Below, piece after piece: positions 1,001 to 7,490 of a DNA stretch of 64,000 nt (position 1 is its first letter; each line of letters starts with the position of its first letter). The notes under the pieces are model-generated. The model worked only from the letters and a program-made list of their open reading frames with translations, was not told the origin of the DNA and did no database searches. The stretch is from positions 57,598,001 to 57,662,000 of the forward strand of contig NC_043006.1 in NCBI RefSeq assembly GCF_006345805.1, read 5' to 3'. A program made the translations under genes and the position numbers. The DNA is from Octopus sinensis (Eukaryota).

Positions 1001-1061
1001 ATGAGAAATTACGCTTTAACCGTCCTTTGTCTTCTGATGATGGCATTTGCATTTTTCATTG
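1001..1061 (+). CDS. Exon 1 (signal peptide) of a secreted beta-defensin-like peptide gene
   Basis: ATG at 1001 gives MRNYALTVLCLLMMAFAFFI (basic N-terminus, hydrophobic core), then one base G and the donor GTAAGG at 1062 (phase 1). The phase matches the acceptor at 6987-6988. Confidence 0.8.
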
Positions 1062-1289
1062 GTAAGGCTTTCCTTGTTTTAAGTCCCCCAAAATATATTC
1101 TATTTCATAACATTTCATTTTTGGTATTCAATAATTAATCCTGCACCACGGACTTATCTTATGTACTCGTACATAAGCACACAATATATATATACAAATA
1201 TATATATATATTATATATATATATATATATAGATATATATATATATATTATATATATATATATATATATACACGCACACACACACATTA

Positions 1290-1330
<41 letters not shown>

Positions 1331-2039
1331 TATTATTATTATTATCATTATCATTATTAAAGATACACGTTTTAAAGCGCTACTAATAGAGAACTCAAAC
1401 ATATTCTTCGGGCGCAAACCACATAGCGTAACGAACTAAAAAAATTGAATAAGTAGAAGAAACGCGATGAAGCTGAGAAGGCAGCATATAGAAAACTTAG
1501 ACAGTAAACAACGGAAAACGAACAACGGAGAAGGAAACTAAAGTGTCAAAATTTAAAAAGTGCTATCCTCCTTCGGCCTTAAATGACAATACTTGAAAGA
1601 TATCAAGGCGGTCAAGAATAGGCAGAATTTTCCAATTCTTCAGAATATATCTATATATATGCATGCAACCACTGAAAATTTCTGACCTAGAGTTCAATAG
1701 AGGATTAGAGATCTTAGATCTGAACAGGATCTGCGTTCTTTCAGCCAAAGTCTACATTTATTCGATCCATTCACATAGGGTATGGCTTTCTCAATTACTT
1801 TCCATTTAATCATACGCGGTGTTTCGTTATCTTTCAAAGTCTATACATAGCTAACCAACTTAGTAGCTTTGTTTTGGTCCCTATGTCGGAAGGAGGCTAT
1901 GCGATTGGCATAGCGATTTTTAAATTATCCTTTACATAATCCAATATAGGTCTTCTTATCAGTGACGCGTGCCATTCAATTTCGTGATATCCGAGTAACT
2001 TTCCATTCGGAAAACTTGGCTCAAAAGAACTCCACCATC

Positions 2040-2320
2040 TCAATTCAATTCAATTCAATTCAATTTTTATTGGCTCAAAAAGCAAAAGCAAGGCCATGTA
2101 GGGGGACAGGGAGTTATGTACAGGGAGGGTGGTCATACAAAGAGTTCAGGCCATTTCTGGTCAAGAGAGACTTTGAACCGAGCGGTCGTCGGCATCTTCA
2201 CTATCTCGTCCGGCAGCTTATTCCACGGATCCGCAACCCGGACGGAGAAAGCCCCTCTCCTTCGATTGAGATGAAATCGTTGTAGATAGAGCTTTTCCTC
2301 ACTTTGAAGTGAGGAATTTA
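2040..2320 (-). mobile_element. CR1-clade LINE 3' fragment
   Basis: The minus strand encodes RRGAFSVRVADPWNKLPDEIVKMPTTARFKVSLDQKWPELFV-stop, followed by a short 3' UTR and an (AATTG)n tail. Confidence 0.8.
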
Positions 2321-3344
2321 CACTAGTATACCTGGATCAGAGAATAAACAAGGTACAAATTACGAATAAACCACCAGAATAAATCTCTTTTCGTAGATGT
2401 GAAAATGTGTTGCATTGGAGGATACTAACACACTACTAGAAATAAAAGAAAAATAATAATCAAAAAGAAAAGTTAGCCTGGATGAGGTTGGAGATCCTAA
2501 TTCAGTTGAAACTTGAAACATTGGAGAGGATCCCCGACTTAATAGTGAGCCCAAGAAGGTAGCAATTGCAGATGGTAGTGAAGGGTTGACGATCTAGCTG
2601 CTGGGTATGGAGGTCAAAATCTTAGAGAATTCGGGGGTTAACAGCTTAACTTACAGCGCTTCCTGTGACATGATTGTACTTCTCGATTGAAATATTGTCT
2701 CTATTTTTTTTTCATCAAGTCACTAGTGTAAACTATGACAAGCCTTATTATGACGGCGCTTATATCCTTTCTGGGCTAACTGTATTGTATCAGACTCGAA
2801 AGTATTAATGATTAATATTTTCCACTCGTTGGTATAATAAACGGCACTTGTTCGATGAAGGGATGGGATAAATATCCTTGTCCATTGAACTAATATTTAG
2901 TGTCATCTTGAACAACTACCATCAAATTTCCAGTTTCTTCCTTTAAATCTCTACGCTAGAGCCGCCCACACGGTGCGTTACGATTATCCATGTAACTGTA
3001 CTTCTACTAGCGTTTCCTTTCATTCAAAACTTATCCTGCTTTGGTATGCTTTCTTTTATCCAAGTCAAACACAAGTTAAGTCCTATTATTACTAATTACC
3101 GTGTCGCTGCCGGACCCGATAAAAGGCTTTGCGGCATTACATTCTGAGGTCGACTTGGTCTTCCTGACACTTAGGGCAGAGAGTTTCTCATTGGTGGACC
3201 AATAAAAATAAATACACTAGATTGTTCATTTACAAAGCCATGTGATAGAGAAAAAGGAAAGAAAGAAGAGATAAAAAGGAAAAAATAATATAAAAATGTA
3301 TGCAAAGAAAATAAAGGGGAAAAAGGAAAGAAAATTCACTGCGA

Positions 3345-4015
3345 CAATGCTCTTCTCAATATGTGTGACGTACAAGTAAAAACAATCTTTTACACTTCCT
3401 GCGTGGATTGTAAGCCAGGTTTCATAAATAATTTTCAGCTCCTTTTATGATCATTCCAAGTGTTCCTACAATCACTGGTATTGTAACCGTCTTGAGATGC
3501 CAAATCTTTTCGATTTCAATTAGCAAATCTTTATATTTTCTGGGCTTATCAAATTCTTTTGCTGAGATATTATGGTCATAGGGTATGCTCATGTCAATCA
3601 ATAAACAGACTTTATTGTTTTGGTATTTCACAACAATATCTGGTTTATTTGCTTTGATGGTCCAGTCTGTACATACTGGAAAGTCCCAAGGAATAGTTAC
3701 ATTTTCTCCCTCAGTTACAGCCTCAGGCTGGTGTTTGTAACATTTGTCAGTAGTTTTGATTTAATGCCGACACATTATCCAATGTAGATATTAGCCAACT
3801 CTGTCATGTCTTGAGGTGATAAAATCTTACACCCAGAGATTAGGTGGTCCACTGTTTCAATCCCATCGTTGCAGTATCGGCACTTTGGGTCTACTCCATC
3901 TTTCATCACATTGACTGGATAGTTCCAGGTCAATAAGCTCTGATCTTGAACAGCCAAGTTAAAGCCTTCACTCTCTGTTTTTATCCCTGAGCTCCACGAG
4001 CATCCCGTAGCCACT
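3345..4015 (-). mobile_element. R4/Dong-clade non-LTR retrotransposon fragment (zinc knuckle plus RLE endonuclease)
   Basis: Broken frames give KCRYCNDGIETVDHLISGC and CLLIDMSIPYDHNISAKEFDKPRKYKDLLIEIEKIWHLKTVTIPVIVGTLG. Confidence 0.85.
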
Positions 4016-4029
4016 GATGGGTGTGCTTT

Positions 4030-4057
4030 ATTATTATTATTATTATATTTATTATTA

Positions 4058-4130
<73 letters not shown>

Positions 4131-4167
4131 CATTCTATGTTTGACTTTTGCTTTATGTCTGTACAAG

Positions 4168-5450: not shown

Positions 5451-5456
5451 TAGTAC

Positions 5457-5631
5457 ACTGGCAGATTATAATATTCTGTATTTACGTTCTGAGTTCAAAT
5501 TCCACCGAGGTCGACTTTACATTTCATCCTTTCGGGGTCGACAAATAAAGTACCAGGTGCGTACTGGGGTCGATCTAATCGACTGGCCCCCTCCCTCCAA
5601 ATTTCAGGCCCTTATGCCTATAGTAGAAACA

Positions 5632-5685
<54 letters not shown>

Positions 5686-5940
5686 TATTATTATTATTAT
5701 TATTATATTATTTTGTTTATTATTATTACGAGCTGGCAGAATCGTTAGCACGCCGAGCAAAAATAAGTAGTAGTATTTCTCTCATCTTTACGTTCTGAGC
5801 TCAAATTCCGCAAAGGTCAACTTTGCCTCTCATCCTTTCGGGGTCGATAAATTACGTACCTGTGAAACACTGGGGTCGATGTAATCGACTAGTTCCCTCT
5901 TCCAAAATTTCAAGGCCTTGTGCCTTCAGTAAAAAGGATT
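5457..5940 (+). mobile_element. Two tRNA-derived SINEs (family B) with ATT tails
   Basis: GTTCTGAGTTCAAATT B-box-like, CGAGGTCGACTTT-CCTTTCATCCTTTCGGGGTCGATAAA-TAAGTACC core, (ATT)n tails. Confidence 0.85.
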
Positions 5941-5985
5941 ATTATTATTATTATTATTATTATTATTGTTATTATTATTATTATT

Positions 5986-6540
5986 GAGTGAGCGAGCAGA
6001 GCATGCCATCAAAGTGACACTGGGGTAAAATATACGAAGCCCAGTATACCCATCATGACTACCCGTCTGATAAGGGTACACCAGGCACATGCATCACAAC
6101 CATATGTGCGCGACATGGTGATCTCATATCAAGATAAACAGCACATGACCTTGCAGGTGGAGCCCAGTTTTAGATTTTCTTCAGATCGAGTAACCCATCC
6201 CGCTCAAAAGGTCCCGAATAAGGGTTATTTAAGGACGTTGAACGAAACACCCATGTTTCCAGAGGTGAATTATTCAAACCCCAAAGAATCCTTCTCAACA
6301 CATGGCTATGATGCTCCCCCACTACTTCTGCTCGTGATCAGAGATGCACATATCGTTAGCCACCAAGGGACATGCTCACTGGTTAAGGTCAAACAACTGA
6401 CAAGCAAATCTGTGGTATTGAGCAGAATATTTGCTCTAGCCCATCTTTTATACCAAGACAAAACAATGTACATGATAACAACTTCCAATCAGTTAAGATC
6501 AGAAGCCATGAGAGCCACTGCCTGGTACTGCATCAGGGCA
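5986..6540. mobile_element. ~555-bp non-coding interspersed element embedded in an (ATT)n microsatellite
   Basis: Complex sequence flanked directly on both sides by (ATT)n. I recognise it as a common octopus repeat. The 237-aa ORF over it has no recognisable domain and runs into the microsatellite. Confidence 0.6.
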
Positions 6541-6662
6541 TATTATTATTATTATTATTATTATATTATTATTATTATTAATTTTATTATTCTTGTTGTT
6601 GTATTATTATTATTTATTATTGTTGTTGTTGTGTTGTTATTATTATATTGTTGTTGTTGTTG

Positions 6663-6704
<42 letters not shown>

Positions 6705-6988
6705 TATTATTATTATTTTTGTTATTCTTTATATAGCGGGACATTTTCAATATTCACTCTTGATCTGAAAAATATACAAAAAGTGATAATTTTGTTCTTC
6801 ATAGAAATGAAAACACAGACACACAGACACACATACATCTAATAAATGTAAATATAAAGGAAGTCTATATATATATATATATATAATATATATATATATA
6901 TATTATATAATATATATTATATATATATATATATAGGGAGTCCGATTCGTTTTCGTTTTCGTAACTTACTTTTTCGTCTCCGTTTCAG

Positions 6989-7121
6989 CAGCTGGGCCAA
7001 CGTCAAGCAAGTGTTCAGACGTGAAGGGGTATGCATTGATAGCAGAATGACTTTGTGTGCCCATGTGATACAACATGGAATCTGTGGCGCAGAATATATG
7101 ATATGCTGCAAACCGTGGTAA
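6989..7121 (+). CDS. Exon 2 copy A of beta-defensin-like peptide (1-nt deletion as assembled)
   Basis: Polypyrimidine acceptor TTACTTTTTCGTCTCCGTTTCAG, phase-1 entry. Reads AAGPTSSKCSDVK, then after restoring one T at 7028/7029 (present in copy B) GVCIDSRMTLCAHVIQHGICGAEYMICCKPW and stop TAA at 7119-7121. Uncorrected, it stops at TGA 7048. Confidence 0.75.
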
Positions 7122-7490
7122 GTTATTTTGGATATAGAATTTAAGAAGACAAGGAATATCGAACATACTACGGTAGGAGTAAAAAAAAGTGGAGTGCAGG
7201 GTTAAAGAGGAAAAAGGAACTAGAATCTAAAGTAGCTAGTGACAGATTGTCTGGGTAAACGGACTTCAAGCAAGTGTTCAGACGTGAAGGGTGTATGCAT
7301 TGATAGCAGAATGACTTTGTGTGCCCATGTGATACAACAGGGAATCTGTGGCGCAGAATATATGATATGCTGCAAACCGTGGTAAGTTATTTTGGATATA
7401 GAATTTTTAAGAAGACAAGAAATATCGAACATACTACGGTAGGAGTAAAAAAAGTGGAGTGCAGGGTTAAAGAGGAAAAGGAACTAGAAT
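7003..7490 (+). repeat. Tandem direct duplication (~224-bp unit, period ~264) of exon 2 plus 3' UTR
   Basis: 7003-7226 and 7266-7490 are nearly identical. They differ by a 1-nt deletion, CAT/CAG, GGA/GAA and homopolymer lengths. Confidence 0.95.
7266..7385 (+). CDS. Exon 2 copy B of beta-defensin-like peptide (intact six-Cys frame)
   Basis: Open frame SSKCSDVKGVCIDSRMTLCAHVIQQGICGAEYMICCKPW, stop TAA at 7383-7385. An in-phase but weak acceptor (GACAG, AG at 7244-7245) would add DCLGKRT in front. Confidence 0.75.
   Translation, partial: SSKCSDVKGVCIDSRMTLCAHVIQQGICGAEYMICCKPW

Follow-up and report, generated by a model that had tools for sequence, protein, structure and literature searches.

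A possible two-exon gene for a secreted peptide of predicted beta-defensin-type fold in Octopus sinensis and the unannotated domain family of its cysteine exon

A short open reading frame (ORF) with six cysteine (Cys) residues in the genome of Octopus sinensis raises the question of whether it forms part of a gene for a secreted, defensin-like peptide and, if so, to which family such a peptide belongs. The ORF lies in a stretch of 64,000 nucleotides (nt) from contig NC_043006.1 (assembly GCF_006345805.1, positions 57,598,001 to 57,662,000), which we refer to as the window and number from its first letter. The original prediction for this locus, made from the letters alone, had proposed a signal-peptide exon, a long repeat-filled intron and a terminal Cys exon with the layout of beta-defensin and big-defensin genes. 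Judged by profile comparison, the Cys ORF is a real domain of a previously unannotated sequence family, and its fold is predicted to be of the beta-defensin type. For the locus as a whole we favour, with somewhat better than even confidence, a two-exon gene, or a very recent remnant of one, for a secreted defensin-fold peptide of this family, with an intact gene and a pseudogene being about equally probable within this reading.

Stand-alone beta-defensin-like peptides occur in vertebrates, in a few crustaceans and in some bivalves. From cephalopods, reports so far are limited to a canonical big defensin (PMC7203481). If expressed, the window peptide would represent a second, sequence-unrelated defensin-fold peptide in cephalopod immunity or secretions, and one that is tied to an unnamed domain family found on secreted hydrolases, including a cell-wall peptidase, of other eukaryotes. 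This family link bears on the origin of the beta-defensin fold, and the locus would illustrate that tiny spliced genes can escape annotation. If the locus turns out to be nothing more than an assembly artefact or a young pseudogene, it is the domain family itself that would be of lasting value.

Sequence relatives of the cysteine domain

The Cys domain is present in two tandem copies (Table 1), and all searches were made with the intact peptide of copy 2 as assembled, or with pieces of the locus separately, the frame being left as it stands. A word-index protein search gave no match with the copy 2 peptide and likewise none with the family alignment. An exhaustive phmmer search with this peptide against 1.84 billion representative proteins returned two matches, P0001 and P0002. 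The top match, P0001 (a repeat protein of 1,718 amino acids), is spurious, having been matched through 'LC..IQQG' repeats that lack the Cys framework. P0002 (132 amino acids, phmmer E 6e-4) is the single credible relative to emerge from this search: behind its signal peptide lie two domains in tandem, SCDSNKGTCIDINKESCVGTLHQGYCPGPSTVQCCEPT and PCDGNKGVCVDTKTQSCDGILRQGYCPGASNIQCCEPT, with the spacing C-x6-C-x7-C-x8-C-x7-CC, and it is encoded on a eukaryotic genomic contig with short introns. Searching with P0002 revealed two further proteins, P0003 with one such domain and P0004, in which one and a half domains precede a Peptidase_M15_4 domain (PF13539). From a metagenome scan came L005, in which a signal peptide and two domains, the first interrupted by an intron of ~110 nt, precede a domain of ~300 amino acids that holds the serine-hydrolase-like sequence IFSHSGGY; neither a Pfam family nor a PDB relative was found for this hydrolase-like domain, and the Cys region of the relatives has no Pfam family either. 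All relatives with a complete N-terminus carry a signal peptide, and in P0002 and L005 the Cys domain follows within a few residues of it.

The kinship of the window peptide with these proteins is carried by a profile built from six domains of the relatives, with the window sequence excluded. Among 2,052 six-frame fragments of the window this profile matches only the two Cys copies (copy 2, 2e-8; copy 1, 1e-6, within the fragment 6858-7118), the next best fragment having an E-value of 1.1. The window peptide scores 31.7 bits against the profile, compared with 19.4 bits for the best of 3,000 shuffles that preserved the Cys residues (z 9.4). With the Cys positions held fixed, such a difference means that the non-Cys residues carry the signal, and thus that the kinship extends beyond a shared Cys pattern. 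The match covers the G before Cys2, the D two residues after Cys2, the G residues before and after Cys4 and the closing CC-[EK]-P. On this sequence evidence, the demonstrable family of the peptide is the unnamed one formed by P0002, P0003, P0004 and L005.

When compared with the domain in these four relatives, the window peptide has the same Cys framework with one residue fewer before the CC pair, and shares K-G-x-C-[IV]-D, Q/x-G-x-C and CC-[EK]-P at an overall identity of 31-38%. Both stand directly behind a signal peptide (in the window through the putative splice) and are alike in predicted fold. The relatives carry the domain once or in tandem, with a hydrolase-type domain behind it, whereas in the window it appears to stand alone, although a partner exon could lie beyond the window.

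The relatives originate from lake metagenomes, one Logan contig and one whole-genome shotgun contig with introns of ~110 nt. No relatives were found among viral contigs, nor in bacterial and archaeal genomes when queried with the Cys region of P0004, and sequence searches of the PDB, run both with the peptide and with the profile of the family, gave only an insignificant ovomucoid match or nothing. Sites of the family were noted at L005 1-1699 (JACCDU011198048.1), L001 598-1160, L003 and L002 5001-5690, with introns of ~110-120 nt; at these sites one or two Cys domains stand behind a signal peptide, and either the IFSHSGGY domain (~300 amino acids) or Peptidase_M15_4 comes after them.

Predicted fold and comparison with known peptides

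The peptide is predicted to adopt a beta-defensin-type fold. AlphaFold modelled the copy 2 peptide from a five-sequence alignment with a mean predicted local distance difference test (pLDDT) score of 87.3, placing a helix at residues 5-8 and strands at 11-14, 23-25 and 34-38; the domain of a relative, modelled from a four-sequence alignment excluding the window sequence, showed the same pattern of helix and strands (mean pLDDT 84.0). In a Foldseek comparison of the window peptide with the PDB, small beta-defensin-fold peptides made up 16 of the 17 matches, with template modelling (TM) scores of 0.49-0.69: these include platypus DLP-1 and DLP-2, AvBD11, hBD1/2/3, crotamine, coral SCRiP and bovine BNBD-12, with DLP-1 as the best match (probability 0.90, TM 0.63). 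Matches for the relative's model were likewise mainly beta-defensin-fold peptides. We assign the fold because this list of matches is consistent, not because any one of them is significant, and to this extent structure prediction bears out the beta-defensin-like fold that had been put forward. The remaining, seventeenth match of the window peptide was a sub-domain of Cypridina luciferase (24ne, TM 0.49). The domain of the relative (model ma9a1e4201cff) fits this sub-domain above any defensin, with a TM score of 0.71 and 33% identity over 39 columns.

The peptide shares with vertebrate beta-defensins the two-exon layout of signal exon, phase-1 intron and six-Cys exon (as predicted for the window), the order C..C..C..C..CC with G-x-C before both Cys2 and Cys4, and a predicted helix with a three-stranded sheet, the TM scores to hBD1/2/3, BNBD-12 and AvBD11 lying at 0.5-0.69. 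Its spacing, C-x6-C-x7-C-x8-C-x6-CC, was as originally described, together with the G-x-C motifs and a net charge of ~+1 (4 K/R vs 3 D/E). Vertebrate beta-defensins are spaced at roughly x6/x4/x9/x6; set against the range that we used for this class (~x6, x3-5, x9-10, x5-6), the first and last spacers of the window peptide fit, whereas the second and third do not, and at ~+1 the peptide is not strongly cationic. A further difference is that relatives of the window family are N-terminal modules of enzymes on non-vertebrate contigs. Pfam Defensin_beta gave no match at E-values up to 10, and hhalign against four vertebrate beta-defensins gave a probability of 12% (P 0.0024) with the six Cys in register.

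In the case of the big defensins, kinship at the level of sequence was not found. The window peptide resembles them as an invertebrate secreted peptide with a beta-defensin-like Cys exon behind a phase-1 intron, and it also resembles the non-canonical big defensins of clams and the panusins in being without a hydrophobic N-domain (PMC7203481). The absence of this N-terminal domain, which the original prediction had pointed out, is confirmed: ~8 residues separate the signal peptide from Cys1, and no exon for such a domain was found in the intron. The big-defensin C-domain is characterised by C-x5-6-C-x3-C-x13-14-C-x4-CC together with profile similarity, and the window peptide shows neither this spacing nor such similarity, with hhalign of the new family against seven big-defensin C-domains (six from molluscs, one from a bryozoan) giving a probability of 1.2%. 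Octopus sinensis itself has a big defensin with the spacing C-x5-C-x3-C-x13-C-x4-CC (supplement of PMC7203481); this is a different gene that differs in sequence and spacing, and BLASTP of the window peptide against it produced no alignment. Membership in the big defensins by sequence is thus not supported.

Clip domains and beta-defensins have the same disulfide pattern. The only Pfam matches of the window peptide are sub-threshold ones, to PLAC and to the clip-domain family CLIP_SPH_mas (E 0.002, 18.9 bits vs a cut-off of 26), the latter having in common with it six Cys that end in CC. Unlike the situation in clip-domain proteases, no trypsin-like exon or motif accompanies the domain in the window, and no clip-domain structure appeared among the Foldseek matches. 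The venom peptides platypus DLP-1/2, crotamine and the cnidarian SCRiPs are alike in predicted fold, with 19-24% identity and no likeness beyond the Cys and Gly positions. No annotated or published counterpart was found: beyond the protein searches described above, the peptide strings were in no paper found, and the papers on cephalopod venoms and antimicrobial peptides (AMPs) that we found describe no such peptide.

The gene model, its frame state and competing explanations

The signal-peptide exon with its phase-1 donor, the ~5.9-kilobase (kb) intron filled with repeats and the strong phase-1 acceptor with an alternative second AG can all be read from the sequence as had been proposed (Table 1). 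Exon 1, which is present once in the window, encodes 17 varied hydrophobic residues behind a short charged start and hence looks like a signal peptide. Its donor is GTAAGG, and the acceptor region combines a long pyrimidine tract with a branch-point-like CTTAC and ends in CAG|CAG, in phase with the exon-1 donor. A strict filter for signal exons (ATG, 15-33 stop-free codons, a strong hydrophobic core and a GTRAG donor), applied to 128 kb over both strands, retrieved nine matches, six of them microsatellite translations and three non-microsatellite candidates including exon 1; the chance of finding a phase-1 candidate of this quality within 6 kb upstream is ~0.05. Relaxing the filter leaves exon 1 as the sole phase-1 signal-like candidate in the 7 kb upstream of the Cys exon. 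The proposed splice places the Cys domain a few residues behind the signal peptide, and thus yields the same arrangement as in the relatives. Taking these signals together, exon 1 is likely joined to the Cys exon by splicing. Besides microsatellites, the proposed intron contains decayed retroelement fragments on the minus strand; these include a weak zf-RVT match, and neighbouring ORFs are without a Pfam match.

Table 1. Coordinates of features in the window
Feature	Position	Strand	Remarks
Exon 1	1001-1061	+	ATG, 20 codons (MRNYALTVLCLLMMAFAFFI) and 1 base; signal-peptide-like; from sequence read
Exon-1 donor GTAAGG	1062-1067	+	Phase 1; from sequence read
Proposed phase-1 intron	1062-6988	+	5,927 nt; splicing inferred from sequence signals
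Retroelement fragments	3422-5440	-	Within proposed intron
Weak zf-RVT match	3775-4014	-	Within proposed intron
Acceptor region	6940-6988	+	Pyrimidine tract, CTTAC
Acceptor AG; second AG	6987-6988; 6990-6991	+	Phase 1
Cys exon copy 1	6989-7121	+	Strong acceptor; frame broken between Cys1 and Cys2
Tandem duplication unit 1	7003-7265	+	263 nt; most of Cys exon and ~145 nt downstream; from alignment, repeat families
Tandem duplication unit 2	7266-7503	+	238 nt; from alignment, repeat families, unit ends read
Cys ORF copy 2	7263-7385	+	Frame intact, reads TSSKCSDVKGVCIDSRMTLCAHVIQQGICGAEYMICCKPW*; no pyrimidine tract or acceptor
Donor-like GTG|GTAAGT	7115-7123 (copy 1); 7379-7387 (copy 2)	+	Overlaps TAA stop
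AGTAAA variant poly(A) hexamers	7178-7183; 7444-7449; 7535	+	First is 57 nt past copy 1 stop, second past copy 2
Microsatellite-dominated stretch	7101-9904		2.8 kb; (TA)n, (TATG)n, (CA)n
SINE-like copies	~8440-8640, ~9590-9780, ~12000-12600, ~25180-25460, ~50900-51310, ~59460-59900 and others	both	
piggyBac-type transposase	52376-54190	+	Decayed
GC-richest stretch	58340-59200		Low complexity
LTR-retrotransposon-type pol fragment	62770-64000	+	Runs off window end

The Cys exon had been described as a single exon in a 64-residue precursor. The ORF with the described spacing exists, and it occurs twice, in a tandem duplication that had gone unnoticed. The signal exon, the acceptor and the Cys pattern of the precursor likewise exist; the precursor itself is obtained only in a repaired reading, with one missing T restored. 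The two units are arranged head to tail and are ~98% identical apart from insertions and deletions (indels), differing by two substitutions, four indels of 1-2 nt and one indel of 24 nt. The duplication begins 14 nt inside the exon, which explains why copy 2 has neither acceptor nor pyrimidine tract. In copy 1, a length difference of 1 nt from copy 2, located between Cys1 and Cys2, breaks the frame, and the remainder of the domain (EGVCIDSRMTLCAHVIQHGICGAEYMICCKPW*) continues in another frame (7023-7121). As assembled, the locus is broken: copy 1 has an acceptor but a disrupted frame, and copy 2 has an open frame but is not normally spliceable. The gene may recently have become a pseudogene, or the assembly may contain an erroneous indel or duplication. 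In both copies the six Cys residues and the G, D and G positions conserved in the family are retained, so that any inactivation must be very recent. No further paralogues or Cys domains were found elsewhere in the window.

In the reading that we prefer, exon 1 would supply the signal peptide, the phase-1 intron would be spliced out, and the Cys exon would encode the last residues of the signal peptide (..AAG), followed by a short spacer and a single six-Cys domain. With the gene presumably expressed and the signal peptide presumably cleaved, the product would be a secreted peptide of ~40 residues with three putative disulfides and a beta-defensin-type fold; most of the Cys exon would have been copied by a very recent 263-nt tandem duplication. 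Since family members precede peptidoglycan peptidase or hydrolase-type domains, we infer that the Cys domain may bind microbial cell envelopes outside the cell or target proteins to them, and the stand-alone form in the window could accordingly be pictured as a host-defence peptide with envelope-binding or antimicrobial function. A more far-reaching proposal, which we regard as speculative and rather improbable, is that the peptide and its relatives constitute an unrecognised trans-defensin-type domain family, older and wider than the big-defensin/beta-defensin lineage of animals, which would serve as an envelope-targeting module on secreted lytic enzymes of microbial eukaryotes and would have been released as a stand-alone peptide in a cephalopod by descent or gene transfer.

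Several observations weigh against the preferred reading. When exon 1 is spliced to copy 1 as assembled, translation gives MRNYALTVLCLLMMAFAFFIAAGPTSSKCSDVKGYALIAE and ends at a stop at 7048-7050, for a product of 40 amino acids. Copy 2 has no credible acceptor, the phase-compatible AGs near it being weak: use of 7244-7245 would add a seventh Cys, and use of 7280-7281 would remove Cys1. The TAA stops of the two copies (7119-7121 and 7383-7385) fall within GTG|GTAAGT, a donor-like site that scores 9.8 bits on a crude donor matrix, compared with 8.0 bits for the exon-1 donor, and no AATAAA or ATTAAA is found on the plus strand in 7101-9904, with the first at 9905 and a window mean of 1.9 per kb. 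Splicing is predicted from signals in the DNA, expression is presumed, and the function of the relatives is deduced from one fusion partner annotated in Pfam. Foldseek E-values are all at least 0.24 for the window peptide (above 0.2 for both models), as is usual at ~40 residues, the models do not allow the disulfide pairing to be read, and the peptide departs from most membrane-active defensins in its charge, which is close to neutral. Finally, no cephalopod or mollusc homologues were found in the protein collections, in which small cephalopod ORFs may be missing; as a 48-residue ORF and a retroelement ORF of the window are also absent from these collections, missing cephalopod homologues mean little.

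Which explanations compete with this reading? The strongest, a serious possibility to which we nevertheless assign the smaller share of our confidence, is that of a genuine copy that has recently been pseudogenised, with both the duplication and the frame break being real and nothing functional being made; it overlaps with the preferred reading, which itself allows a pseudogene. The truncated reading of copy 1 and the missing acceptor of copy 2 are what a dead gene would leave behind, the sequence is present in neither the 1.84 billion representatives nor the word index, and the good domain signal would merely reflect how recent the damage is. Furthermore, big-defensin and AMP-type gene families are prone to tandem duplication, pseudogenisation and variation in presence and absence (PMC7203481). 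On the other side, indels account for five of the seven differences between the units, and several of these indels fall in short homopolymer runs, in the manner of uncorrected long-read assembly error, so that the pattern fits such error as well as real slippage, and the retention of every conserved family residue in both copies also argues against a dead gene.

It is unlikely, in our estimation, that the Cys exon is an internal one, whose apparent stop is the read-through of a phase-2 G|GTAAGT donor and whose domain is the N-terminal module of a longer secreted protein with later exons downstream, on the pattern of the enzyme-fused relatives or of clip-domain proteases. The strength of the donor-like site relative to that of exon 1, the lack of a canonical poly(A) signal for ~2.5 kb, the weak CLIP_SPH_mas match and the fact that the domain lies ahead of a further domain in all four relatives would suit this explanation. 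Any phase-2 exon before GTAAGT shows such an in-frame TAA when read through. After TGG-TAA, however, a GT follows by chance in ~6% of cases, and the donor-like site is therefore not compelling. Moreover, searches of the 57 kb downstream and of the rest of the window yielded neither an exon for a trypsin-like, M15 peptidase or L005-type hydrolase domain nor another Cys domain, although short exons could escape such a search and the gene could run past the window. The designation of the Cys exon as terminal in the original prediction is, for the same reasons of stop context and missing poly(A) signal, unproven.

We hold it to be similarly improbable that the same gene model encodes a venom or salivary peptide, or a protease inhibitor, directed at the ion channels or proteases of prey. 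Venom peptides that share the fold (platypus DLPs, crotamine, coral SCRiP) are indeed among the best structural matches, and a membrane-active antimicrobial peptide would not usually be so close to neutral in charge. Likeness in fold alone, however, cannot separate these functions; the only relatives by sequence carry hydrolase-type domains behind the Cys domain (in one case a cell-wall peptidase) and come from organisms that are unlikely to be venomous, and the cephalopod venom studies that we found contain no such peptide.

That both the Cys ORF and the signal-like exon arose by chance in repeat-rich DNA is very unlikely in view of the profile matches to just the two Cys fragments and the shuffle test with fixed Cys, together with the confident fold prediction and the strong acceptor exactly in phase, even though signal-like ATG-to-GT segments are frequent across the window under the relaxed filter (79 in 128 kb, mainly derived from repeats and microsatellites) and the gene model was built from sequence signals rather than transcripts.

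Other features of the window

The remainder of the window is characterised by repeats, a content that fits the octopus-like genome named in the original prediction. An element resembling a short interspersed nuclear element (SINE) is present in many copies on both strands (Table 1), and its translations recur as '..NRPRKDERQS..LGGI'. We take it to be similar to an abundant octopus SINE; searches of the window against Rfam at gathering thresholds gave no match, this element included, and the repeat string was in no paper found. The GC-richest stretch of the window (GC content 0.47) combines low complexity with a strong negative GC skew and translates as poly-Pro/His/Thr on one strand and as poly-Val/Asp on the other, which suggests no function.

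Two further remnants of mobile elements lie towards the end of the window. The decayed piggyBac-type transposase matches DDE_Tnp_1_7 (E 3e-24, 2.5e-12 and 7e-10) across three frames, and the frame-broken pol fragment, of the type found in long terminal repeat (LTR) retrotransposons, matches RVT_1 and RT_RNaseH_2 with E-values down to 7e-19.

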